DNA of 64,000 nt from Entomortierella parvispora E1425 (taxonomy: Eukaryota; Fungi; Mortierellomycota): NCBI GenBank assembly GCA_020891255.1, contig BQFW01000008.1:930001-994000 (forward strand), given 5' to 3'. The translations under genes and the position numbers were made by a program. Below are positions 4,869 to 41,326 of the stretch, piece by piece. The notes beneath the pieces were generated by a model. It did not search any database, was not told where the DNA came from, and was given only the letters and a program-made list of their open reading frames with translations. Position 1 is the stretch's first letter, and the number at the start of each line of letters is the position of its first letter.

Positions 4869-6204
4869 ATGTCTGATTCCGACAGCGAACACGAGCAGCA
4901 ACTTACCCTTGAGGACCTCGAGGGCTCTGATACCGAGATGCTCTCCGGCGACGAGGACGGTCCCGTTGATATCTTCACCAAGCAGAAGGTCACCGTCAAC
5001 AACGAGGTACTTTGTCCCCCTTGTCCTTCTCTGTTTGCAAGGACACCACACAGCACGACCTTTTACTTTCACTGGCTGCTATCGGTACCCCACTGACGGT
5101 TGTTCGTCAGTAGCGTATACGACTTGGGAACTCTCATGGACCTGGAAGAGCCGACGTTATCCACTGAAACTTTGCCCTCTTTTTCGCATCCCTCTTTTAC
5201 TTACTCTCCATCTCTCTCACTCTATAATGAACTTAGCCTGCCTTGAGACGTCTCTGCGAACAAATTGCTCTCCCCACCGATATCCCCTGGTCCGAGACCC
5301 AGTCCATCACCTCATCTGTACCCGTCCATGTGGTCGATCCCGATGATGATTTGAACCGTGAGGTCGCTTTCTATAACCAGGCCTTGGAGGCCGCAGTACA
5401 GGGACGGGACAGGATAAAGAAGGAGGGAGGTGTCTTTGAGAGACCTGGAGATTATTTCGCCGAGATGATCAAGACGGACGACCATATGGCCAAGATCCGT
5501 CAAAAGTTGTTGGATGAGAATGCTTCGATCCAGGCCAGCGAAAGGGCCAAGGCTCAAAGAGAGTTGAAGAAGTTTGGAAAGAAGGTCCAGACCGAGAAGA
5601 GACTCGAGAGAGAGAAGGCCAAGGCGGATGCTTTGGACAAGATTCAGACACTCAAGAAGAGTACGTATTCATCGGAACACTTGGATTTTCACGCCCGCCT
5701 CACAAAAAATGTTTTGAAAAAAGGAAAGGAAAAAAGAGTCCTTGATATCATGGTTCAGACCGACTAACTTTTTTTTTTTTTTTGTGTGAACACCATTGTC
5801 ATTCTTTCCAATGAATAGAGCGCCAGGGCGGTGATAGCACAGGAAACGCTGATGACGAGTTTGATGTGGCTTTGGCCAGTGATGATGATGAGATGAAGGC
5901 CTACAAGACTGCAGGCAAGGGAGGCAAGAACCAGAACGGCAAGCGGCCAGCAGGATCTTCCTCTACGACAGAATCCAGAGGCAAGCGCATGAAGAAGGAT
6001 CAAAAGTTTGGATTTGGAGGCAAGAAGAGATTCGGAAAGAGCAACGACGCCAACAGTTCTGCTGATGTCTCGGGATTCAATGTCAAGCGTAACAAGTCAA
6101 CATCTTTCAAGGCTGGACACAAGGCATCCAAGGGTGCCGCCAAGGGTGGTGCCAAGCAGCGCCCCGGAAAGGGTCGTCGTCAGAACGGTGCTGGACGCAA
6201 GTAA
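4869..6204 (+). CDS. EBP2: rRNA-processing protein EBP2 (60S biogenesis), 3 exons
   Basis: PWSETQSIT, DDDLNREVAFYNQALEAA, RPGDYFAEMIKTDDHMAKIRQKL, RELKKFGKKVQ and the C-terminal KFGFGGKKR...KSN and QRPGKGRR signatures of Ebp2. Confidence 0.92.
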
Positions 6205-6355
6205 ACAAATCCCATATACTCGGTCCCAGCACACTCCTCCCCATCAACATTCATTTGCATTCGATACACTGGGACAAATAAACCCAACCTCGCATCATAT
6301 TATTATTTGAATATTTTCGATATATTTTATTTTTATTGAGATCCGATTGCCATGT

Positions 6356-9176
6356 CTATGAAGTGCTTAAATCTTCCAATCGGCTTGCAATCGAGTCGGT
6401 CGTGATATTGGTCAAAATGGCAGGAGACACTACAAGAGAGCTGGAAGAAAGCGGGGATGCCATGGTTGAACGGCTAATGATAGGATCCGGAGAGTCTACA
6501 AGACGTGACCGAACAATCATAACCTCCCCTGTTGGTCCTATGAGTAGACACTGCGCCAAGTCAGAGCGTACACCAGTGGCCGTAGAGGAGGTCGAACGAC
6601 CAATACTGGGACTTCCTAGGGACCGATCTAAAACCGCAGGTTTGCCGATGGGGCTGGCAAACGTGGTGCAAACCTTCCATCCCAGCCCAACTTGCAATAG
6701 ACCAACGCGCCTTCCTTGTCTAGCAGGATATATCTCCACTGTTCCGCGCTTTGGAGCATAGATCACCAAGTAAAGTAGCAAATGTTTCTTCTCGGTCGAC
6801 TCTGCTCCCTCATTATTAGTGACTGGAGTTTTGCTGCGAACAGTTCTTTCCTCCTGTATCCAACCGCACTTGGCTCCACGGAGCCCCTTCCACATCCGAA
6901 TGATTTCGCACTCTTCCAAGTCCACCAGAAGAACACGACCCAAAGAATCAGTCATTGCCGCCAATTTGGATGGATTGTGATAACACGATCCACGGGGTGG
7001 TGATGGTGCAAGAGAGACATGGCGGATGCATCGCTGAGAGTCACTGAGCCTCAAAACTGTAGGAACTTCAGTGGCTGGGGCTAAAGCTGAAGGGTAGATG
7101 GTGCCATAGGGTCCAGCGGTCCCATCCTGAGTTCCCTGTCCAGAGAGACGCTTTGAATCCGGGCTTGATCTTCCACTGTTAGCGCCTGGAGCAGGTGAAC
7201 CCGGCCTTGATGAGCCAGAGTTGCCCCATATTGATTTAGCAAATCCAAAAACGGCATTGGTGACCCTGGCAGCCATTTGTGTGGCAAGAGAGGTGGCAGA
7301 GAAGAGGGGGCGTCCTGAGCTTGAAGAGGCGTAAAATGCTATCATTGGCTTGGAGCCAACAGAGATAAAGCGTTCCGTTGCCTGAGAGGTATACATTGAA
7401 GAGCTCGACGACGATGAAAATCCATTTGACAGAGTGGGTTTGTGGCGGGCAGGGCCTATAGTATAGCGGTATCAATGTGTAGTCGCCATCAGCAGCACGA
7501 AAAAGGCAGTGTGTTTAGCGAGCCCAATACCCATTCATTCTTACCGCAACTAATAACGTCAACCAACAGGTCCTGGTTCATCAAACTCCACTTCTTATAA
7601 GCAAATGTAGCTGCTTGAACAGATATAGGATCTATCGAGAAGTTCCGTGTCATTAATAAAATGAGACGGCGTAGACGAGTATCATCTTTCATTGTACTTA
7701 CCACCTTGGCGCCCAGAGCCACTTGATAGGCGGAGAACAACCCAAAGGCTTTCGCCTTCAATGCACACCACTTTTCCGTCTTCGTGCAAGATTGTCATCT
7801 CATCCTCATCCTCGCCTGGGATCCTGCCAGCTCCAACTCGAGTCTTAATTGAGACAACGGGGGTATGATGGAGCTGCTGCACCACTACAAGCTGACCAGA
7901 CTAGTTTTCCCCACCAAACAATTATTAATACGCGTAAGTAATTGGGCGGGCTTTTTGACAGAGTCAACGTTCCTAGATAAAAAATCGCCTACCTCATTGA
8001 AAATCCTGATCATTCCAGATTTATAACCTACAACAACATATACTTGACTGGAGAAGAACCAGTTGCGTCAACTATTGTCGTCGAACCAATGCACGCAATT
8101 ACCTTTAAATAATGAATAATTACCTATTGATTGATCTTGGGGCATAGAGCGGTAAGCAGAGAATGGTTGTGATGCCGTCCCTAAATCACATAAAAAAATC
8201 AAAAAAAAAAAATCAAAAAAAAAAAATCAATGACACGCTCTTCCAATCCTGCTCAAACAGTCCGCTACGACAGCATTATGAATCTTACAGAGGACTGTCG
8301 AGACCGGAACCTTGGCCAACCAAAACCCATTCCTCTATGCTTTGTGGTGATCCGTTCCTCTCGTTTTGATTACTGTCCAGCTGAGGAGAGGTCACTCCGG
8401 ACCGTGGCTGTCGCTTCAGTATCGCAAACATCTTCTTGCTGGCGCATGCAATGTAACGACCACTGTCGCAAACAGATATACAAAGGTCCTGTGCCACACT
8501 CAATGAGCTTTCTTCGGAAGCAGGTGTAGTGGTGGTTGTGCTCGCGTTGCTTGAGGCATGGCTCGAGTTACCGCGCAATGAAAGTCCCGCGTTATCGCCA
8601 GTCGATGCACCGCCATCATTGGCGATCAACCCCAATCCTGTTAAAGAATCCTTGGCGGCTCTGGCTGACGGAACCAGTAATGTGTTACCATACTTTGCGC
8701 CTGATGTCGTAGAGGACTGAGCAGCCCGATAACCACGGTTGTTGTTCCCAGAGGAGGTTGATGTTTGTTCTCCGTCCGACCACTCCCACTCATCGTCAGG
8801 GACGTTCCAGGATCGACCTCCTTCATTGTCCTTGGTGTCCTCTGAGCGTGTGTTCTGGTCCGAGGCAGCCACGTGCTCCTGAATACTAGGATTAGTCTCA
8901 CGCCTCGTGTCTTCATCCTCGTCGTCTTCAGAGAGGCGATCGTCATGGATCGAGGATTGTCGCTGCATGGCTTCCACTTCCTGTCTGGGGTCTAGTGGCC
9001 GGTTGTCACAAGTTTGTCAGTTTCCAGCGGCTATTTTAAAGAGGTTAAAAAACGGGGCCATGTCATACTGACGTGAAGTATGTACCTGGAACCCTGGGCA
9101 ACGATCCCAACAGAATTGCCAGTACCTCGCGTGGCATGCTGCCATGGGGCACTAATTCCCATCGATGATGCGACAT
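6356..9176 (-). CDS. RAB3GAP2: Rab3 GTPase-activating protein non-catalytic subunit-like (RAB3GAP2 N-terminal domain), multi-exon
   Basis: LAAMTDSLGRVLLVDLEECEIIRMWKGLRGAKCGWIQ and LVIYAPKRGTVEIY...QGRRVG match RAB3GAP2_N. A first exon MSHHRWELVPHG...RVP (ATG 9176) splices in frame to DPRQEVEAMQR. Confidence 0.8.
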
Positions 9177-30698: not shown

Positions 30699-31505
30699 TC
30701 AAAAAACGTCAGTCTTGTTGGAGATGGGGGGTAGGACTCCTTGGACAATCCGGACGCTGGCCGTGAGCATCGAAGGCTCCATATCATAGTGCTCCTTGAA
30801 TCGTTGGTAATAAGGCTTGCCCTCACACCGGGCGTTGGAGTAAAACACAAACGAGTGGTTTCGAGATCCGACAAAAGACTCGATGACGAGCGGACTTTGC
30901 AGCGGGATACATCCACATCCTCTCAGGACCGCACCCTCGGCCTTGAATGATGACTTTCGAAAGAGTCGGACGACCCCTACCTCGGGAATGAACGAGGAAG
31001 GCAGGGAGGGAGACATGTCTGCTTTACAGCGTGCAATGATTTCCTCGGGTGTGTCCCCTAGAGGAGTGGGGGATCCGGTGATTGGGCGGCTAAGGTAGCT
31101 GCCGCCCTTGTCTTGGTGAGAACTAGACGGCCTTGGGTGTTTGCTGCTGTGAGAAGCAGTAGAGGTGGGGGGAGGGAGAGGAATCGAGGAAGTAGGGACT
31201 ATGGTTCCAGTCGTGAAGTGGATGACTGGTCGATCTCTCTCTTTTTCTGGCCGGACAGCCAAGGGGACGAAGATGTTGGGTATCCGAGGCACATCTGGCT
31301 CTGGGTCGATGTAGGTAGGTGTTGGAGCAGGATTGTCCAGTAAACGGGAGAATATGGAAGAGTCTTCGAGTTGACGTTCTGTCAGGCGTGTGCGGGTTGA
31401 TCGTGGAGGATGGGAAGAGGTGGAGGATTCAATGGGCGCAGAAGCGACGGTGCAGAGAAAGAGGATCAAAAGTATGCATGCCCAGAGGAAGGTGCATCCT
31501 GCCAT
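30699..31505 (-). CDS. Intronless secreted 268-aa protein: signal peptide, P/S/T-rich linker, C-terminal beta/gamma-crystallin-like domain
   Basis: N-terminus MAGCTFLWACILLILFLCTVASA. C-terminus VVRLFRKSSFKAE...CGCIPL...ESF...FVFYSNARCEG...TASVRIV resembles two Greek-key motifs. The fold call is an inference. Confidence 0.6.
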   Translation of the reverse strand: MAGCTFLWACILLILFLCTVASAPIESSTSSHPPRSTRTRLTERQLEDSSIFSRLLDNPAPTPTYIDPEPDVPRIPNIFVPLAVRPEKERDRPVIHFTTGTIVPTSSIPLPPPTSTASHSSKHPRPSSSHQDKGGSYLSRPITGSPTPLGDTPEEIIARCKADMSPSLPSSFIPEVGVVRLFRKSSFKAEGAVLRGCGCIPLQSPLVIESFVGSRNHSFVFYSNARCEGKPYYQRFKEHYDMEPSMLTASVRIVQGVLPPISNKTDVF

Positions 31506-32279
31506 TGTGGCTATGATGGAGGAACGGGGGATAAAGAAAGGATAGAAGGAAATCGGGTGAAGAGAAAGAAAGAGAGAGAGCAATAGGGGTGAAGAAGAGG
31601 GAAAAGAAAAATGAGAGAGAGACGAGACGAGACGAGGAGCAAGCAAACGGCGACAATTTTACATAACTACTGTATGCTTGCAAGCATAGGTCAGTCAGAC
31701 CTCGCCAGTCGCCATCCCGCCCTGAGAGATGGTTCCAGCGGGCCGTTTCAAGACGGAAATAGCTCAGTCCGTCGAGGCGCGTCATTGTCCCTACATGTAC
31801 AGTACGAGCAAGACGAGGACGAGGACGAGAGTCAAGGGCCAAGCAAGGTCAGACAGAAGGGAAGGGAGACGCACCCGCCCCCCGTCTGTTGCAAAACTTG
31901 CAGCCCACAAACACACACACACGTCCACTACGGACCGGAAGGAAGAGATATGCTCCGTCGGACGAGGCTCGACGCTCTGAATGAAATCGGTGGCAACGAA
32001 CAAAGGCCGTCCAGCAGTCACACACACACTGTCCATCCCACCTCTCACATCACATCTCTGCACTTGACTTCACTTTCATAAAATCATCCACCCACGACCG
32101 TGCCTGCACCTTCGACACCAAGCTTACTTTCAACCTCCCTCCTCTCTTTCGACACCCGCCATCCAACTACTGCTTGCAAATCCCATGCCGTCCCTGGCCT
32201 GCTCTGCTCTGTCCCTGTAATCTATTTCCCGTTTCATCCCCAGCGCCGACAGAGCTGAGTGCTTCTCCGAGTCTCCGTC

Positions 32280-35200
32280 ATGGCAATGACCCCGCGGCCA
32301 GCAACTTCACAGATGCCTTTCGAGTTTGGCGTCCCCATCGATCCCACCTACTGCAAGGTCCTCCAGCAACGCATCCACAAACTCCTTAGTACTGAAATCG
32401 AAGGGTGTGTGCACACATTTACTTTTGTTGTATTCTGTTGTAAATGATCTCGGAAAATGCCGAGGCCCCATCTCGACCCGTTCACGCGATGAGGACTTGA
32501 CCCGGCGCTACAAATCAATCTTTCACATGGACGAGCACGAAAGGACAGTGTAGTCAGGATGACAAGCATCTATTTGAATCGCCAATCCAAGGGCAATTTG
32601 ACAGGACATCAAGGGAGGCCATCATCAAACAAAGAGACAGGGATCACCTTGACATGGAAAACACATGGAAAACACACCGACCCACACAAAAATGGCGAGC
32701 TTTCGCCAAAGTGCGCAAAAGGGGGCTTGACCCCTCTTTATCCGCTGCGGACGCTGCTGCGATAACCTTGGACAAGGACATGAAACGCGCCTGGACAATC
32801 CAGACAGTCTGCCGCATCCGAAGCCCCTGAAGACTGACTACTTTTTAAACCCTCATTGTTACGCGTCCTTTGTGTCGCAATAGGTTCCCAGGATCATACC
32901 CCACGCTATTCGAGCCAGCACATTTACAACTCCTTGCCAATGAAGAATACTTTGTCACGGAAAAGGTCACAGGAATAAGGCATATGCTCCTAAGTACCCA
33001 GACTCCAAAAGGACCTGCATGTTTTCTGGCAAGTGCACTCAGTCTATGGTTATTGGATTTCCTTGGTGTTTACGCGAGGGTTGTGTTTCTAAATGAATAG
33101 AGTTTCCTCTTTCTGTTTGTGCTTGCTCCTTTAGATTGACCGGCATTACCAGATATCGTTCGTTCCCAATCTTCTCCTCCCACTTCGAGAAAGTCCAACC
33201 AAATGTCACATCGACACAATACTGGATGGAGAATTGGTTTCTGAGGGAGATGGAAGCAAGGTCAGTGACAGAAGTTCTTGGGTATGAAGCTTCTGCGACC
33301 TCAAGATGTGCGCGTTAACTGAAGATCTGTGTACTTTGCTTGATTGTAGAAAACCTTGCGTTTCTTGGTGTTTGACTTAATGGTTTTAAATGGCCTTTCA
33401 GTTACTCAGCGATCATACAGCACCCGGTTAGGGGTAAGTGAGGCTCCCTTTTGAATCATAGGGTGGAAGGCTCCTCAAGAAGGAAAGAAACTTACGACGA
33501 TTCTCTTTCATAGATGATGGACCAAGATATTCTGGGAGTACAGGCAGCAAAGCTGAGCGAAGTGAAGGCAAAGGAGCCTTTTACGTAAGAATGGATTCGA
33601 ACTGCAGGACCTCTATTGCACTCCGAATACGCTCCTAACTCACGTATTTATTTTCCTAATAGCATTGAACGAAAGACCATGCAGCGGTCGTATGGATTGA
33701 ACATTATCTTGGCTGGTAGTAAACGGCACAAACATGGAGGCGAGGGCTTGATATTTGCACCAGTCAAGCAGGCATATATCCCTGGAATTAGCCCAAAGCT
33801 GTAAGAATCTTGTCCTTTGCGTGGTCTCATTGAAACTCTGATGACTGACGCCTCCACTTGACTTGATTAGGTTAAAATGGAAATCGCATACCACTGCACA
33901 GTTTCAAATCAAAGTCACCTTCAGCAAAGAGCGGAAACCTCTCTACTGCATACACGTCAGGCAAGGAACGGGGACAAAGTTCTACGACTATGTGACACCA
34001 GAGCCAGCACTGGCCTCAGAGTATGTGCTGATTGCTAAGATTCTGTAGTTATCTCGTCAGAATATGTTCTCAGGAATCGGACTAACGGGTTGCATTGTTT
34101 TAAAACTGATTAGGTGGCATACATCTTCACCAGATGGAAAAAACGCAGAGTTTTGGTATGTACTATTTTAATAGCCGAGCCTCTGGACATTGCCCAACTG
34201 GCCCATTCTCATTTCTGACATTGTAATTTCTCACAAACGAAACAAAATAGGTGGGATGCACAATGGCCAACACAAATGTTCGAAAAGGGCTATGGATTGG
34301 AGACGCGACAAGGTGGTTGGCGCTACTACAGAACTCGGGAGGACAAAAAAGATATCGACGATGAAGCCACACTGCAGACAATCGTGAAGAGCCTAGACCA
34401 TATGGTGACAAAAGAACAGGTTCGTGAACTTCAGATACAATTACAACCTTCAGATCTTTCACTACTCCCTTGACTGACCACCCTTGTACGTTATGTTTTC
34501 AGCTTGAGAGCCAGATTGATCACATCAGGACGCAGTGGAAGGCGAGAGAGGCCGGCGGTGCTGCAAACGGGAAAGAAACGAATTCGTCTCAACGACCCTC
34601 CATGAAACCTTTGACTATTAACAATAACATAAGGTAACGCAGAGGTCTAACTCAGTCGATCAAACACGTACTTCTCGAAATGAACTACCTACTGACTCAA
34701 CTACATTTTTCTGTGAACAGCCATGCTGAGAATCACCCGCCTCTAATGACTCCATCACTCAGCTCTACCTACCTTCAATCGCCCTCTGTGGCGGGTCATT
34801 CAGGATCTCATGGTTACTTCTCAAAGAGAGATCGGGAGCGGAAACCGTCTATGGACGACCAAAGTTCGTCAGGGTCTTCTGCGGGATCAATCACTGGAAC
34901 CTTTTCGCACCCATTGCCGCCAAAGCCTCAACCATTTCGCATGAGGCAGACGTCAACAGACCAACCCAACCAACTTTCTCCATCAAGTTCGTCATCGCCA
35001 TTGAAAAATTCTGATGTGGAGCGAAATACGATCGACCCTTCACTTGGCGCCTCAGCGGGCGCCGCCAGTGAGGATATTAAGCCAACAGGCACTAGTACGA
35101 CCCCCGTAGCTACGACCGCATCAACGACTACACCAACCTCAACCTCTCCCGCACAGTCAACGTCGACGACAACTGTGAAGAACCCGCACAAACTGTCCCA

Positions 35201-38200
35201 AGTTCAGGCCCACCTTCAACCTATCAAATCTTGGATGACTGCATTACCCTCTCCTCGGGCGCCACCCATTGAGAAACCGGTGAAAGCCCTCTCTGAGCCC
35301 AGTATACGTGGAGGCTCCACCTCAAGGAAAAGCTCAATGAGTGGGTCTGGCCTGAGCAAAGAAATACCGATTCCAGCCGTTCTGAAAGCAGGGATAGTTG
35401 CCAGTCCATCGAGATCTTCATCACCAAACCGCAAATCTTCGCTATCACAAGAGGATTTGCCGCAAACGCCAATACCGGCCCGCGCAAATTCTGCTACACC
35501 TCAGCCATCTTCAGTCATTGCTGTCCCTATTCTTCCAGCCTTGAGTCTCCCTCGAACCAGCCTGGCGCTTCCAGATTTGGTAGAAAATGCCGAGGATGCG
35601 GAGGAAACGAAAACAGATGTCGAACAGGATGAGCAAGCTGTGATGACAGGGGAGATGAAGAGTCCAAATACGCTTTCGCGCTCAATACCGGCGAGCGATG
35701 GGACACCAAAACCGTCGCCCATCCTTGGAAAACGCACTGTTGGGGGATCTCCAACTACAGAAGGACCACCGACAGATTCTCTTGCTAGGCGGAGAAAGTT
35801 ATCTGATGGATTTCACCCGTCACCAAAGACCGAAGCAGTGGTATCAAGGCTGGACACTCTGCATCTAGTGAATACGCCAACAACATCCCAACCAGCAGAG
35901 CTTTCGGCTTCCTCAATACCCTCGAATTCTCAACATGCGGTGCGGCTCGATTCTGGGGGGGAAACCCACAACTCTCTGGATACCAAATTGGCAGTGCATG
36001 GTAACCATGTTGACCCATACCCGGCAAAAATCGAAGAAATCTACTCTGGCGCGGAATCAGGGGCACTTAGACCTCTGGAAAGTCGTTCTGATGTCGAGGA
36101 TGGCGCTCATACAGAAGCTCGACCCAACTCGATATTACAGGATACAGTCGTCAATATGCATCTGGATACAAAGTCTGAACCCAAGTTGGACCTTCCAGTA
36201 CCCATGTATGACCAGCCCACAGACCACGAAAAGCAACAAGCCTTGGCGCGTGCTCGAGCACTTGCATCTTCAAAAGTGCAACAGGAGCTGGAGAGTCGTC
36301 TTGCCAAGGAAAAGAAGCGGCTAGAGGACATTGAAAACTTCAAAGAAAAGTCTCGAGTGAGGACGGAAAAGGCGCAGAAGAGAAAGATCCAAGAAGCTAT
36401 GGAGACGCAAGTGCAAGATCGCCGTGCACAGCCGGTTCGTCAGATTAATCAGCAACAACAACTTCAGCGCTCAATGTCTTCACCTCAGGAGCAACAACGT
36501 ATGACGTATGTCACTCGGCAGTCGCGAGCAGGCACTCGACCAGAGACTAACTCCAGTGGTCAGAACAGCCCTCGACCCCATGGTCGACTTGTGCAGAGTG
36601 CTGTGAAAGAACAACGGAACTCGCCTCGATTGTCGGTGTCTGAGCCTCAGGCGGAAACAAACGCACAGTCTGTTAAGAGAGAGTCTGGTTCGGTACAGGA
36701 TGATCGAAACGAGGGATCACCACCAAAGGCATTGGCATTGGATCAGCAAGGCTCACAGCTATTGCTTCCTGAAGAAGCACCCCGTTATCACAGGAGGATC
36801 AACTCGGTGGACTATCAGCGACAAACAGCAGAGCCCTTGGGAAGCATTCGCCGTGATTCGAATCAATCGTCTTCAGGTCAAGGGAGCTTTGAGGGTCAGT
36901 ATAGAAGTCCCATTAGCAAGCGTTCAGACAATAGTCTCTATGGCGAATCCAGTTATATACGTTCTCAATCTGACATTATTCATCTTCTTTCTGCAGAGAG
37001 TCGAACCTCAGGGCAACAAGCCGATGGCCGGCCACCTCATACAGGACCAAATGGAGCCTCCGTTCCTCAGTACAGTGCGGATAATGATGGCAACTACTCC
37101 CCTTCTCAGTCTGAAGGTTCCAGAAATGGGACGCCTGGAAGGCCCATCCCTGCCAAGCGCGAGTCTAAAGCAAGACTCCAATTTATCCTCAACAATGACT
37201 CGCCCAGCCCAGAAAGCTCCCATGGAGATGATATGATTGAGCGGCCGTCGATATCAGAGGCACCGGCGTGGTATCAGCAACACCCAGAGAGTGAGCGACG
37301 CCTGTGGACTGACGGACCTGTGCCACATGGTCAACAACCCTCAGATCTCGAGGAATATACCCCACACGATCGAAGTGCCAGTGCTCACGAACGATTCCCT
37401 AGCATTGCCATGGAAGCAGATCCCGGTCGACGTTTGCCACTTAGAACCTCCACGCTTATTCCAGCTGCTCCAAGGAATGTGGAACGGTCTGCGTACAGCA
37501 CAATGCCAGAGTCTTATGAATATCCAGGTCGACACACTCAAGGTGACATGGCTCCTATGGCATTAGTGAATGAACGCCAGACTGCAAAAGCACCGCCACC
37601 CCCTGAGAGATGGCACGTACAACATCTTCAGCAATCTCAAGGACACGCATCAACACATCCAGGACAGCAAGTCCCCATGGCTCAGACACATAATCCTGCA
37701 AGGCGAGTGCCTCAAGATGGACCAAGCACACAGTCCCAGCAGCCTCCTTTATCCAGCCGAGAGTCTATGCAAGGACTAGACCAGGCTCCGTACGGACATG
37801 CTTCGCCTCGCGCGCCTTCCTCCGTGGACCACCAGGGTGTGCCCGCCAATGGGCCTGGACTAGTTTCAAAGCGGCCTCAGAAGATTTCTCACTCTCGACA
37901 CTCTTCATTGTCAAAATCAGGGCCAATGAACGAGGCCATGGTTCAGGGATCACTATACCAAACCCCTCGCCCGGTGTTTGCGCCCGGATCGACTCATTCA
38001 GCACCTGTACAGGCGGACTACTATGCTCAGTCTGCCTCTATGATGAATATGAACCAGCCATCGGCACGCTCCGGACCCCCTCCTCATGACGTCGCCCCAC
38101 CCGCACGCTTTCAGCAGCCGCTTCACCATCCTCAGCAGCATCCAATGCAACAACAAGGAAATTTGAATGCAGGATCCAGGAAGAAGGTTGCATTGGATCC

Positions 38201-39041
38201 ACAGGCAGGGCATGAACTCTCTCAGCAGCCGGGACCAGGCCCTCAAATGGCCTATGATAGGCAGCCACGTGCAGCTCATCCTCAGCAGTACCATCCTCAG
38301 CAACAGGGGTCGCAGCACATGCATTCGCATCGGCACTCATCTCATATTGAGAGTGGCGGCCATGGGTATGAGGCTGAACAGGAGCATGGGGTAGTTCACA
38401 GACATCCAGCGAGTGCTCACCCCCAATTGGGATATTACGAGCATGAGCCACAAACTCCACCTGGGCCAAGCCGTCCAGTCATGTACGGGTCACACGCACC
38501 CCATCCGGGGCAGGAGCGTCATGCCCCTGGATATCCTGCCCATCATGCCTCCACACCCTCGCACGACTTTGCGTACCATGCACCCCCTGTGAGCCATACG
38601 AGAGGAGAGCCAACGCACAAGGGAGATGGGCGTTTAGCTCATGGCGGGCGATCATCCAACTCTCACATTCCGGCTGACCACCAGATGCAGCAACAACAGC
38701 AAGGTCAAAGGTCATACCCGCCACATAACCAAGCTCAGGCTCCTCCTCCTCAACAGCAACAGCATCACCAACAGCAGCCCCAACAGCAGCATCAACACTC
38801 ACATCAAACACAGCAAACACATCTCCACCACGAATATCGACAAGGACAAACTGCCTATCGTCCATACCCGCCACAAATGCAACAGCACATGCAGCAGCAT
38901 CCATTGCCCCAGAATGGCTCGCATCCAAAGGTGTCCTCGCCGCGACATGGTCACCCAGGCGATTATGACCCAGCTTATCGACCCCATGCCCCTCACCCGC
39001 CGCCAAGGCCATCTCACGGACACGGGGGTCCAGCGTGGTGA
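32280..39041 (+). CDS. Divergent mRNA capping guanylyltransferase (NTase + OB domains) fused to a very long disordered tail; 11 exons, 1833 aa
   Basis: Exons 32280-32404, 32884-33028, 33135-33260, 33350-33433, 33514-33584, 33663-33800, 33871-34020, 34114-34155, 34251-34419, 34503-34633, 34721-39041 are all phase-compatible (5502 nt). Motifs FPGSYP, I (EKVTGIR), III (TILDGELV), IIIa (RFLVFD), IV (GEGLIF), V (LLKWK), VI (WRYYRTREDK). CEG1-family. Confidence 0.85.
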
Positions 39042-39604
39042 ACATGTCATTTCATGTCCTACAACAATTTCATTCGACGCAGTTTGCTCCTTGTTCTTTT
39101 TATTATGTCTCGCATGTATTGTAGTTGTATATTTCTCGAAGATAAAGAACAAACGAACCCTTCACGAACAACTTTATTACGCGAATGACCACATGATCCC
39201 ATTTGACCGTTCATGCATCCAACCTGGTAGCCAGTCAGCTGTGGGCTGGTGTGAAACCCCACGTCTCACCGTCGCACGTTTATTGACTTCAAATTTACAG
39301 CAAGGACCCTTTTCGGCGTCCATCACACATCTTGCACCTCCTTTTTCCACTTTGCATTCCGTCTCATTCCAACTCATCGCAACTTCACAGAAACAAACAT
39401 AGGCAAAACAATCCGCTTGGACATTGATCTTGTCGCCACCACTCGACCGACTCGACCCTATCTATTAGCTTCACTTGGTCGACCGTTGGTTTTCTCTCCC
39501 TTCCTTTCCAAACTACGCTGTTTTTTTTTATTACACGCATTCCCTTTGTTGCCGATTCGTTAGAACCCACTCAGCACCAGCACCAGCACCAAAATAACCA
39601 AAGC

Positions 39605-41326
39605 ATGTTGCTCTTGGTACCAACCGAGGACTCGACAGAGTCACCCTCATCCAGTCAACAACGCGTCTTGGTCATTCTTCCTCCTCGAGCAAACCTCGGG
39701 GCTGACACGATGGTGGTGCCAAGAGACCGTCGTGCAGGAGGAATGGCGACAGGTCAGTCCTTGTTGGACCCATTGAACCCTGCGAGCGGACGAAGACGAC
39801 ACAGCACGCAGGCCATCATGGTTTCTTCTTCCCAAGCCTCTTCATCGACCTCATCGACCTCATCGCCCTTCGTGTCAGCGTTACACAGCTCAAAGAAGGA
39901 ACGAAGGGGATCTCATCTCGGATTGTCGCGTTCAACCCTACGCCACTCCTTTAGTCAACCCTCCTCTCGGATATTCACAACCTATTCCATGTCATCGTCG
40001 TCACCGTCGCCCTCGACGATGTCCTATGCACAAAGGTCCTCATCCATGATGGTGGACGATGACAGTGAAGACGATTACTTATACCACGAAGCCTTCAAGT
40101 CAAGCCGAAGCGTTCAATCGCCCCTCTTGTTTTCCAAAAACTCGGAGCATGAAGAGGACTTGAGACTTCTCAAAAGCGACTACAGACAGAGTGTCGCCAC
40201 CGGAGGTGGGGTCATGGCGCGATCAACCGGGAAATGGAAATCCTTGAAGCAGATTATTGATGCCCCTCGGTCCACCACAGAAATCCCTTCGGGAGTGGTC
40301 TACCCCATACCTACAGCGATCGATAAACGACCGTCCATAGGGATTGAATCTGAAGACGAGGGCAATAATGGTGTCGAAGAAGGAAGCGAGGATCGACAGC
40401 AAACAAAAAGTTCAATTCCTGGTACCCCAACGAGTGAAAAAGTCCAAGCCTCTAGTTTTCTGTCGGCCGTAGACAGGACTTCCTCCTTGTCTTCATCCTC
40501 TTCCTCTTCGCCTTCTTTCTCCCTGTTGAAAGTGCAATCAGTGCCCTCGTTCATCTCGTCTCCCGGACTACGTTCACCAATGGGGGACTCTGCCTTGACC
40601 TCACCTACACGTGGACGCCGACATGTCTCTGAAGACAGAACCCCATACTTGACTGCAGACGATATCTCCAGTTCTTTGAATGCACATCTGACACCGCTTG
40701 AAATCCAGAGTCGCCTTTATTACCAGCGCGAACGCCAGACCTGGTCCCGTAGTCAGCGTCGCGCTCGGAGTACCAGTCATCGACCCCATCATCACCTCCA
40801 CCATCACCGACAGCAGCGGGAGTCTACAACTGGAATGTCAAACAGCAAGGAGCAATCACAACAGCTACAACAACAGCCCTGGCCACTGCCGAACCAATCA
40901 TCCCTTCAGCATCAGTTACTGTCGCTAGCCTTGGCAACGCCGTCCAGAATAGGGGCGGTGCATCCGTTTGATCGAGATTCTGCCACGATGCCGCCACCGC
41001 CCCCTCCTCTAACGCAATCCCGACCTATTTCAAACACAGGTGGGATGACGCCCACAAAGGGTACTGGGGAGGGGGTTCCACTGCCTCCGGTTTCAGCAGA
41101 GGAAAAACGGCACTCGCTCCCAAATGCATCTCGCATGGATCTCTCAGGAGAACAATTCCCTCATCTTCCAAAATTGCCTCCAAGCGCGTTCCGGACGGTC
41201 GAGTCGTTGCGACTGGACGAGGAAAAGATTAGGAAGGAACAGCTGGAGCAACGGCAGAGGGAGAGGCTGCTGCAGGAGCAAGATGAGATTGATCGGTTCT
41301 TGGTCTTTCCTTCTCCCACTCTCTGA
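39605..41326 (+). CDS. Hypothetical 573-aa Ser/Pro/Gln-rich, largely disordered protein with a short C-terminal coiled coil
   Basis: Uninterrupted 1.7-kb ORF from ATG with a downstream AATAAA. No recognisable domain. Confidence 0.7.
   Translation: MLLLVPTEDSTESPSSSQQRVLVILPPRANLGADTMVVPRDRRAGGMATGQSLLDPLNPASGRRRHSTQAIMVSSSQASSSTSSTSSPFVSALHSSKKERRGSHLGLSRSTLRHSFSQPSSRIFTTYSMSSSSPSPSTMSYAQRSSSMMVDDDSEDDYLYHEAFKSSRSVQSPLLFSKNSEHEEDLRLLKSDYRQSVATGGGVMARSTGKWKSLKQIIDAPRSTTEIPSGVVYPIPTAIDKRPSIGIESEDEGNNGVEEGSEDRQQTKSSIPGTPTSEKVQASSFLSAVDRTSSLSSSSSSSPSFSLLKVQSVPSFISSPGLRSPMGDSALTSPTRGRRHVSEDRTPYLTADDISSSLNAHLTPLEIQSRLYYQRERQTWSRSQRRARSTSHRPHHHLHHHRQQRESTTGMSNSKEQSQQLQQQPWPLPNQSSLQHQLLSLALATPSRIGAVHPFDRDSATMPPPPPPLTQSRPISNTGGMTPTKGTGEGVPLPPVSAEEKRHSLPNASRMDLSGEQFPHLPKLPPSAFRTVESLRLDEEKIRKEQLEQRQRERLLQEQDEIDRFLVFPSPTL

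Follow-up and report, generated by a model that had tools for sequence, protein, structure and literature searches.

An apparently undescribed clade of Ceg1-like proteins in early-branching fungi, exemplified by a long-tailed Entomortierella parvispora protein with an altered active site

Introduction

Capping enzymes are generally regarded as single-copy, essential and invariant in eukaryotic gene expression. The mammalian capping enzyme RNGTT is put to a non-standard role in the cytoplasmic recapping complex through its Pro-rich C-terminal region, which binds an adaptor, while the protein derives from the same gene as the nuclear enzyme and keeps its chemistry intact. The closest described relatives of the protein reported here are the fungal guanylyltransferases Ceg1 of Saccharomyces cerevisiae, Pce1 of Schizosaccharomyces pombe and Cgt1 of Candida albicans (reference structures PDB 3KYH, 4PZ6 and 1P16), in which tens of residues follow a fold made of a nucleotidyltransferase (NTase) domain, an OB domain and a C-terminal helix. 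Here we analyze a Ceg1-like gene, annotated by NCBI as EMPS_05965, that lies on the forward strand of a 64,000-nucleotide (nt) stretch of contig BQFW01000008.1 from the soil fungus Entomortierella parvispora E1425 (Mortierellomycota); this whole stretch is referred to as the window, and coordinates are those of the window unless another locus is named.

The encoded protein resembles Ceg1, Pce1 and Cgt1 in its NTase, OB and C-terminal helix architecture (TM 0.76-0.83), in its Lys nucleophile, in motifs III, IIIa and V and the R-x-D-K of motif VI, and in the equivalents of residues through which Pce1 contacts the RNA polymerase II (Pol II) C-terminal domain (CTD). It differs from them in its placement in a separate, older clade, in four pocket changes (KVTG, EG, Asn to Asp and FPGSYP), in a diverged OB domain and in a 1440-aa tail. 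With RNGTT it shares the possibility of a capping-type guanylyltransferase working through its C-terminal region; unlike RNGTT, it appears to be a separate paralogue with an altered pocket, and no adaptor is known for it. Its nearer relatives, members of what we call clade 2, include Spizellomyces punctatus SPPG_01390 (1436 aa) and proteins of Phycomyces blakesleeanus (598 aa), Lichtheimia hyalospora (778 aa) and Ambispora (447-462 aa), all annotated merely as capping-enzyme-domain proteins. These relatives likewise carry a disordered tail after the fold with a common KRxS(K)AxLxFILN peptide, but most of them retain the canonical KxDG, DG and Asn.

Results

Two clades of fungal Ceg1-like proteins

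Word-indexed protein searches, with a single full HMMER scan beside them, yielded approximately 280 related proteins, and a phylogeny of 61 sequences was computed with IQ-TREE. The exons and the annotated EMPS_05965 protein served as queries. The fungal proteins divide into two clades, with support of 100/98 for clade 1 and 98/86 for clade 2. Clade 1 comprises all Dikarya enzymes, including Pce1, together with enzymes of Zoopagomycota, Glomeromycota and chytrids, and also takes in short proteins (339-448 aa) of Mortierellaceae and Phycomyces. The E. parvispora gene falls in clade 2, along with the long forms of other Mortierellaceae and proteins from Mucorales, Ambispora, Calcarisporiella, Dimargaris and several chytrid orders. 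No Dikarya protein was found in clade 2 among the sequences sampled, and the clade seems to have been lost in this group, which includes the mushrooms and yeasts. Within clade 2, the Mortierellaceae long forms make up a subclade with support of 100/100 on a stem of length 0.82.

An approximately unbiased (AU) test rejected a tree uniting the long and short forms of Mortierellaceae (dlnL 120.6, p 7e-13), a grouping that was named after the tree had been seen, and a recent duplication within the family was ruled out on this result. Both paralogues occur together in at least six species, namely Gryganskiella cystojenkinii, Linnemannia elongata, P. blakesleeanus, Batrachochytrium salamandrivorans, Geranomyces michiganensis and G. 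variabilis. Because the two clades co-occur within species and the AU test rejects a family-level duplication, the phylogeny places the duplication before the split between chytrids and terrestrial fungi and supports the E. parvispora gene as a Ceg1 paralogue, not an orthologue of the housekeeping enzyme. A separate short enzyme with canonical motifs is present in Gryganskiella, Linnemannia, Podila, Benniella and Mortierella polycephala, and the housekeeping capping role most likely belongs to such a separate short clade-1 gene.

Calcarisporiella thermophila has two clade-2 proteins, of 1320 aa and 442 aa, that are weakly supported sisters in the tree and may represent a further lineage-specific duplication inside clade 2.

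Guanylyltransferase fold and active site

The coding sequence and the elements of the fold are as follows.

32280..39041, forward strand: whole coding sequence of the clade-2 Ceg1-like gene, 11 exons, 1833 aa, frame open to a single terminal stop
32280..34633, forward strand: exons 1-10, NTase and OB fold with C-terminal helix, about 370 aa, then a short linker (Pfam and AlphaFold2)
32885..32902, forward strand: FPGSYP, Tyr in place of Gln (Pce1 Gln45)
32963..32974, forward strand: motif I KVTG (reading on as KVTGIR), Lys nucleophile and Gly kept, Asp replaced by Thr
33225..33239, forward strand: motif III DGELV, from the translation, DGE kept
33362..33379, forward strand: motif IIIa FLVFDL, from the translation, FD kept
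33742..33756, forward strand: motif IV EGLIF, Asp replaced by Glu
34336..34359, forward strand: motif VI REDKKDID, R-x-D-K kept, distal Asn (Pce1 Asn335) replaced by Asp
34503..34550, forward strand: C-terminal helix of the fold (LESQIDHIRTQWKARE), containing the equivalent of Pce1 Arg364

Pfam families PF01331 and PF03919 match colinearly over the exons. EMPS_05965 scores 129 bits against PF01331 (cut-off 29.6), covering profile positions 5-194 of 194, and 25.3 bits against PF03919, slightly under the cut-off of 26.5, compared with 101 for the canonical enzyme of Mortierellaceae. The AlphaFold2 model of residues 1-390 has a pLDDT of 86.8 and superposes on Pce1 with TM 0.79-0.83, as well as on Cgt1, Ceg1 and human RNGTT, and the best Foldseek matches are Pce1, Cgt1 and Ceg1. 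The superpositions on Pce1 and Cgt1 span approximately 375-397 alignment columns, with both the OB fold and the C-terminal helix present in the model. By these measures the predicted NTase and OB fold is complete, as a preliminary description of the locus had held.

The active site was mapped onto the GMP contacts of Pce1 (PMC4066402). Equivalents of Lys67, Gly70, Arg72, Phe144, Lys195, Gly220, Ile222, Lys240, Lys242, Arg328, Asp330 and Lys331 are kept, with motif V reading LLKWK and thus preserving KxK, while Gln45 is altered to Tyr, Asp69 to Thr, Asp219 to Glu and Asn335 to Asp. Checking the translation placed KVTG, FPGSYP, EGLIF and REDKKDID exactly where they had previously been read. In Pce1, Gln45 makes a water-mediated contact to the ribose O3' (PMC4066402). 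The four altered positions are fixed throughout the Mortierellaceae long forms, with Tyr or Phe at Gln45 and Ala or Thr at Asp69 (Thr in E. parvispora, Ala in the other genera of the family), and Linnemannia carries an additional Gly70 to Ser change in motif I. Two of the altered residues belong to the metal or triphosphate site, where the changes are conservative. The Asn of motif VI and the Asp of motif IV were reportedly listed as essential in mouse Mce1 by Sawaya and Shuman in 2003. Pce1 Cys65, which contacts guanine O6, was dropped as a possible indicator that guanine specificity had been lost, as canonical clade-1 enzymes vary there too.

In Pce1, the Pol II CTD is held at its Ser5-phosphates by Arg157, Gly164 and Arg364. 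The alignment shows equivalents of all three in the E. parvispora protein, and almost every clade-2 sequence compared keeps them too, the nucleophile-less ones among them.

Erosion of catalytic residues across clade 2

Comparison at 12 catalytic positions revealed departures from the consensus in at least six independent lineages of clade 2 and in none of clade 1. The nucleophile Lys is replaced by Arg in Rhizopus, Hesseltinella, Spinellus and a 776-aa protein of B. salamandrivorans, and these four proteins are therefore unable to form the covalent intermediate. Besides Mortierellaceae, five of the seven remaining altered proteins show the Asn335 to Asp change, and Asp219 to Glu is shared by Mortierellaceae, Spinellus and Cladochytrium. 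Loss of the motif I Asp, combined with Glu or Thr for the motif IV Asp and Asp for the motif VI Asn, also occurs in Spinellus and the 776-aa B. salamandrivorans protein, so that the Mortierellaceae pocket is like that of nucleophile-less lineages at three positions. Most clade-2 lineages, long-tailed chytrid forms included, have fully canonical motifs, which makes it probable that the ancestor of clade 2 was an enzyme. Because catalytic residues have been lost repeatedly in clade 2, the comparison indicates that the function this clade conserves is independent of covalent catalysis.

A divergent tail with conserved islands

The tail is encoded by the terminal exon and contains the following elements.

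34721..39041, forward strand: terminal exon tail, about 1440 aa of low complexity, with orthologous tails in six other Mortierellaceae species
34749..34859, forward strand: conserved tail island TPSLSSTYLQSPSVAGHSGSHGYFSKRDRERKPSMDD, with a core that recurs in Mucorales tails (SILPSPS...GYF)
35184..35255, forward strand: tail island PHKLSQVQAHLQPIKSWMTALPSP, conserved in the alignment
35781..35828, forward strand: basic island LARRRKLSDGFHPSPK, conserved in the alignment
36228..36530, forward strand: charged K/E/R/Q-rich segment EKQQALARAR...QDRR..., kept within Mortierellaceae
37155..37211, forward strand: clade-2 signature motif KRESKARLQFILNNDSPSP, from comparison of clade-2 tails
37230..39038, forward strand: post-motif extension, Mortierellaceae-specific, about 600 aa, poorly conserved except at its end

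A composition count gave the order that had been described earlier, from S/P/T-rich through charged to Q/H/P-rich, and residues 1231-1833 contain 15% P, 13% Q and 10% H. Pfam recognized no domain in the 1439-aa tail. Mean column identity among Mortierellaceae is 33% in the tail and 68% in the fold, with conserved tail islands at residues 404-440, 450-469, 549-572, 748-763, 900-997, 1079-1089 and 1206-1224. Islands of this kind, set in a tail that diverges elsewhere, are what a disordered scaffold carrying short linear motifs would show, and the basic island LARRRKLSDGFHPSPK looks like a putative nuclear localization signal.

One of the islands is the clade-2 peptide KRxS(K)AxLxFILN, which in E. 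parvispora reads KRESKARLQFILNND (37155-37211). Seven Mortierellaceae proteins carry this peptide, as do Ambispora (as KRQSKAMLEFILND), at least nine Mucorales, where ...SKAMLDFILN or ...QKAKLDFILN forms the extreme C-terminus, Calcarisporiella and Dimargaris (KSDLNFIMN). A variant, KR(T/S)SAW(L/M)D(V/I)VMG, lies close to the C-terminus in Spizellomyces and Geranomyces. The peptide was not found in the other proteins scanned. Whereas the Mucorales proteins end with the motif, approximately 600 more P/Q/H-rich residues follow it in E. parvispora. The extreme C-terminus of this extension (39000-39038), ...SSPRHGH..D.DP.YRP...HGHGGP(A/S)W, is kept in Entomortierella, Gryganskiella, Mortierella GBA30 and Linnemannia gamsii, and this Trp-ending sequence is possibly a further short motif.

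TFIIS-N-terminal-domain interacting motifs (TIMs) occur in disordered regions of elongation factors (PMC9987994). The E. parvispora signature segment is similar to these, as a resemblance only, in that a short hydrophobic and likely helical LQFIL stands beside an acidic, phosphorylatable NNDSPSPE within a long disordered region; it differs in that the Mucorales form of the motif is the end of the protein, without an acidic stretch after it.

Clade-2 members with a long tail have total lengths of 560-2148 aa. Those of chytrids (895-1735 aa) come from Polychytrium, Fimicolochytrium, Spizellomyces (1436 aa), Geranomyces (1602 aa) and Thoreauomyces (1735 aa), and further long proteins are found in Dimargaris (1315 aa) and Calcarisporiella (1320 aa). 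In S. punctatus, one uninterrupted exon (4947-8183 of its locus) codes for both the final fold helix (LLGRIETIRAHWKARE) and the entire tail, approximately 1070 aa. Given the long clade-2 proteins in chytrids and this single fold-tail exon, comparison across the clade indicates that the long tail is ancestral to clade 2 and not a new fusion. The joining of a guanylyltransferase to a long tail, previously presented as a local event, must on this evidence be assigned to the ancestry of a clade that includes chytrids.

Gene model

The model was rebuilt from the DNA; its exons and the introns of interest are listed below.

32280-32404, 32884-33028, 33135-33260, 33350-33433, 33514-33584, forward strand: exons 1-5
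33663-33800, 33871-34020, 34114-34155, 34251-34419, 34503-34633, 34721-39041, forward strand: exons 6-11
32405..32883, forward strand: intron 1, 479 nt, about five times longer than the others
33029..33134, forward strand: intron 2, GC-AG, donor GCAAGT
34634..34720, forward strand: intron 10, 87 nt, phase 2, linking fold to tail
36895..36996, forward strand: segment treated as an intron by NCBI, 102 nt, in frame, GTCAGT...CAG

The exons sum to 5502 nt in frame with a single stop at the end, reproducing the earlier account of ten phase-compatible introns that join the fold to a 4.3-kb terminal exon and yield 1833 aa. Nine of the ten introns are GT-AG, and removal of the GC-AG intron 2 restores ...ACFL/IDR..., which is conserved across all homologues. 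Apart from intron 1, the introns measure 70-106 nt; no additional exon was found in intron 1, and an Rfam scan of 31000-40000, intron 1 included, returned no match. Matches of capping enzymes in tblastn fall on the exons of the rebuilt model. The terminal exon has no stop in 1439 codons, compared with 36 and 56 in the other two frames, and is 98% identical to the EMPS_05965 protein and 49% identical to the Gryganskiella orthologue over 99% of its length.

Except that it starts at the second Met and splices out the 102-nt in-frame segment at 36895-36996, NCBI's model of EMPS_05965 (1797 aa) is the same. The peptide of this segment (YRSPISKRSD...RSQSDI) is conserved in six orthologues, so the segment is probably coding sequence, and the NCBI intron was set aside as probably false or alternative; over this interval the unspliced reading first put forward for the terminal exon looks better than the database one. 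If intron 10 is retained, a stop follows directly after the donor (AGG TAA; ...NNNIR-stop) and the product is 393 aa, making it possible that the fold is also made as a stand-alone isoform without the tail.

Many Mortierellaceae clade-2 models (Podila, Modicella, Haplosporangium and Mortierella spp.) are only 341-492 aa long, and some of these short models seem to run into intron 10 or drop internal exons. Public annotations of the gene thus appear often to be truncated. The gene is flanked downstream by a 573-aa Ser-rich open reading frame (ORF; 39605-41326, forward strand) and upstream by a 315-aa ORF with a hydrophobic, signal-like N-terminus (30699-31646, reverse strand). Both neighbors are syntenic with the Gryganskiella locus at 39-54% identity, where no Pfam match is recorded for either.

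Discussion

We regard it as reasonably probable that EMPS_05965 encodes a Ceg1-derived, Pol II CTD-docking module whose chemistry has been weakened or re-tuned and which is joined to a motif-bearing disordered scaffold. The fold would still dock on the Ser5-phosphorylated CTD; its nucleotide chemistry would be weakened or re-tuned, the core role of the clade being independent of it; and the tail would act as a scaffold whose conserved peptide islands recruit partners. A more specific version can be advanced only tentatively, namely that the protein is a pseudo-capping-enzyme adaptor, with the fold anchored on Ser5-phosphorylated Pol II while the tail peptide KRxSKAxLxFILN and the other islands bring a partner to early transcription complexes.

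Several observations weigh against this proposal of a docking module with altered chemistry. CTD docking is derived from alignment alone, and capping enzymes each read the CTD in their own way, according to the paper that describes the Pce1 CTD contacts. In an AlphaFold2 model of the full-length Ambispora clade-2 protein, the signature motif is not docked on the fold and the tail has a pLDDT of approximately 30; if functional, the motif probably binds another protein, and such a partner is only postulated. The root of the tree consists of unnamed environmental sequences. The preliminary description had called the gene a second copy distinct from the housekeeping enzyme: the separate clade and the AU test bear out the distinction indirectly, but no canonical CEG1 was retrieved from E. 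parvispora itself, its existence being deduced from five sister genera.

The pocket also furnishes evidence on that side. Within Mortierellaceae, the Lys nucleophile, the motif I Arg, the motif III Glu, the motif IIIa Phe, both Lys of motif V, and the Arg and Asp of motif VI are invariant; the motif VI Lys is kept or replaced by Arg, and only Linnemannia departs from the motif I Gly. Such constancy in a family that is no more than 70-85% identical points to continued selection there for nucleotide binding, and perhaps for catalysis. In addition, the motif I Asp is reported to be dispensable for enzyme guanylylation and in vivo capping, and in RNA ligases such as DraRnl motif IV normally has Glu (PMC1807946). 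The KVTG change is thus by itself no argument for inactivity.

These same considerations feed the strongest competing explanation, in which the protein is a still-active second nucleotidyltransferase that serves specialized capping, recapping or RNA-end modification, with a re-tuned pocket and the tail as a targeting device. We judge this rather unlikely. In its favor, the Lys, Gly and Arg of motif I, the Glu of motif III, the Phe of motif IIIa, the Gly and Ile of motif IV, the Lys-x-Lys of motif V and the Arg-x-Asp-Lys of motif VI are all present, nearly all of them family-wide, the ancestor was probably an enzyme, capping can do without the motif I Asp, and RNA ligases such as DraRnl work with a motif IV Glu. 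Moreover, the stem branch of 0.82 followed by strong conservation looks like a functional shift and not like decay. Against it stand the reportedly essential status of the motif VI Asn and the motif IV Asp in mouse Mce1, the same residue combination in the nucleophile-less Spinellus and 776-aa B. salamandrivorans proteins, and the Gly to Ser change of Linnemannia at a motif I position that is essential in related enzymes such as DraRnl (PMC1807946). Since three positions match catalytically dead lineages, yet the nucleophile and nearly all phosphate-binding residues are constrained, we give roughly equal weight to a re-tuned enzyme and to a pseudoenzyme that would still bind nucleotide.

It is very improbable that the gene model is an artefact that combines a stand-alone 393-aa guanylyltransferase gene with a separate gene for a low-complexity protein starting at the ATG at 34680. 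Read-through of intron 10 does meet an immediate stop, that ATG does open the long ORF, and the fold-tail fusions of Mortierellaceae are gene predictions throughout, known from genomic sequence alone. However, the flanks of the intron 10 junction are conserved on both sides across six orthologues, the Gryganskiella orthologue has an intron at the same position and in the same phase, and the first tail island (SSTYLQSPSV...GYF...) has counterparts straight after the fold in the Mucorales proteins of Phycomyces, Radiomyces and Lichtheimia. The S. punctatus exon covers fold and tail together, the tail motif, among the proteins scanned, occurs only in those bearing the clade-2 fold, and the gap between the stop and the next ATG would be 45 nt only. 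The comparative evidence therefore indicates that fold and tail are one gene. Still less credible is that this is the sole housekeeping capping enzyme, an ordinary Ceg1 with an acquired long extension, for although tblastn with canonical enzymes over the 64-kb window matched only the EMPS_05965 gene and no second guanylyltransferase was retrieved for E. parvispora, the protein is not orthologous to Ceg1 or Pce1 in the tree and AU test, five other Mortierellaceae genera encode a canonical short enzyme separately (the long form being there as well in two of the species in question), and four pocket residues are changed.

A published description of a fungal Ceg1 paralogue or capping pseudoenzyme, of a second fungal Ceg1 clade, of the tail motif or of the catalytic erosion was not found in the literature searched, which left out most subscription journals, and the proteins apparently constitute an undescribed gene family of early-branching fungi. 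Databases name them either 'mRNA capping enzyme, catalytic domain-containing protein' or 'Dcp1p-Dcp2p decapping enzyme complex alpha subunit'. The latter label is widespread on both paralogues and looks like a pipeline error for 'capping enzyme alpha subunit'. Labeling paralogues as a capping alpha subunit, or wrongly as a decapping subunit, obscures which gene is the true housekeeping one.

Among the fungi sampled, the old, tailed second gene is carried by Chytridiomycota, Dimargaris (Kickxellomycotina), Glomeromycota, Mortierellomycota and Mucoromycota. Clade 2 can be viewed as a natural experiment on which non-capping uses of the fold are kept, be it docking on the CTD, binding of nucleotide or cap, or recruitment of partners. 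This question can be approached in concrete, testable terms through the FILN peptide and the altered pocket, and Mucor, Phycomyces and Mortierella are tractable. If the reading as a pseudo-capping-enzyme adaptor were true, these proteins would represent an undescribed type of transcription-coupled factor.

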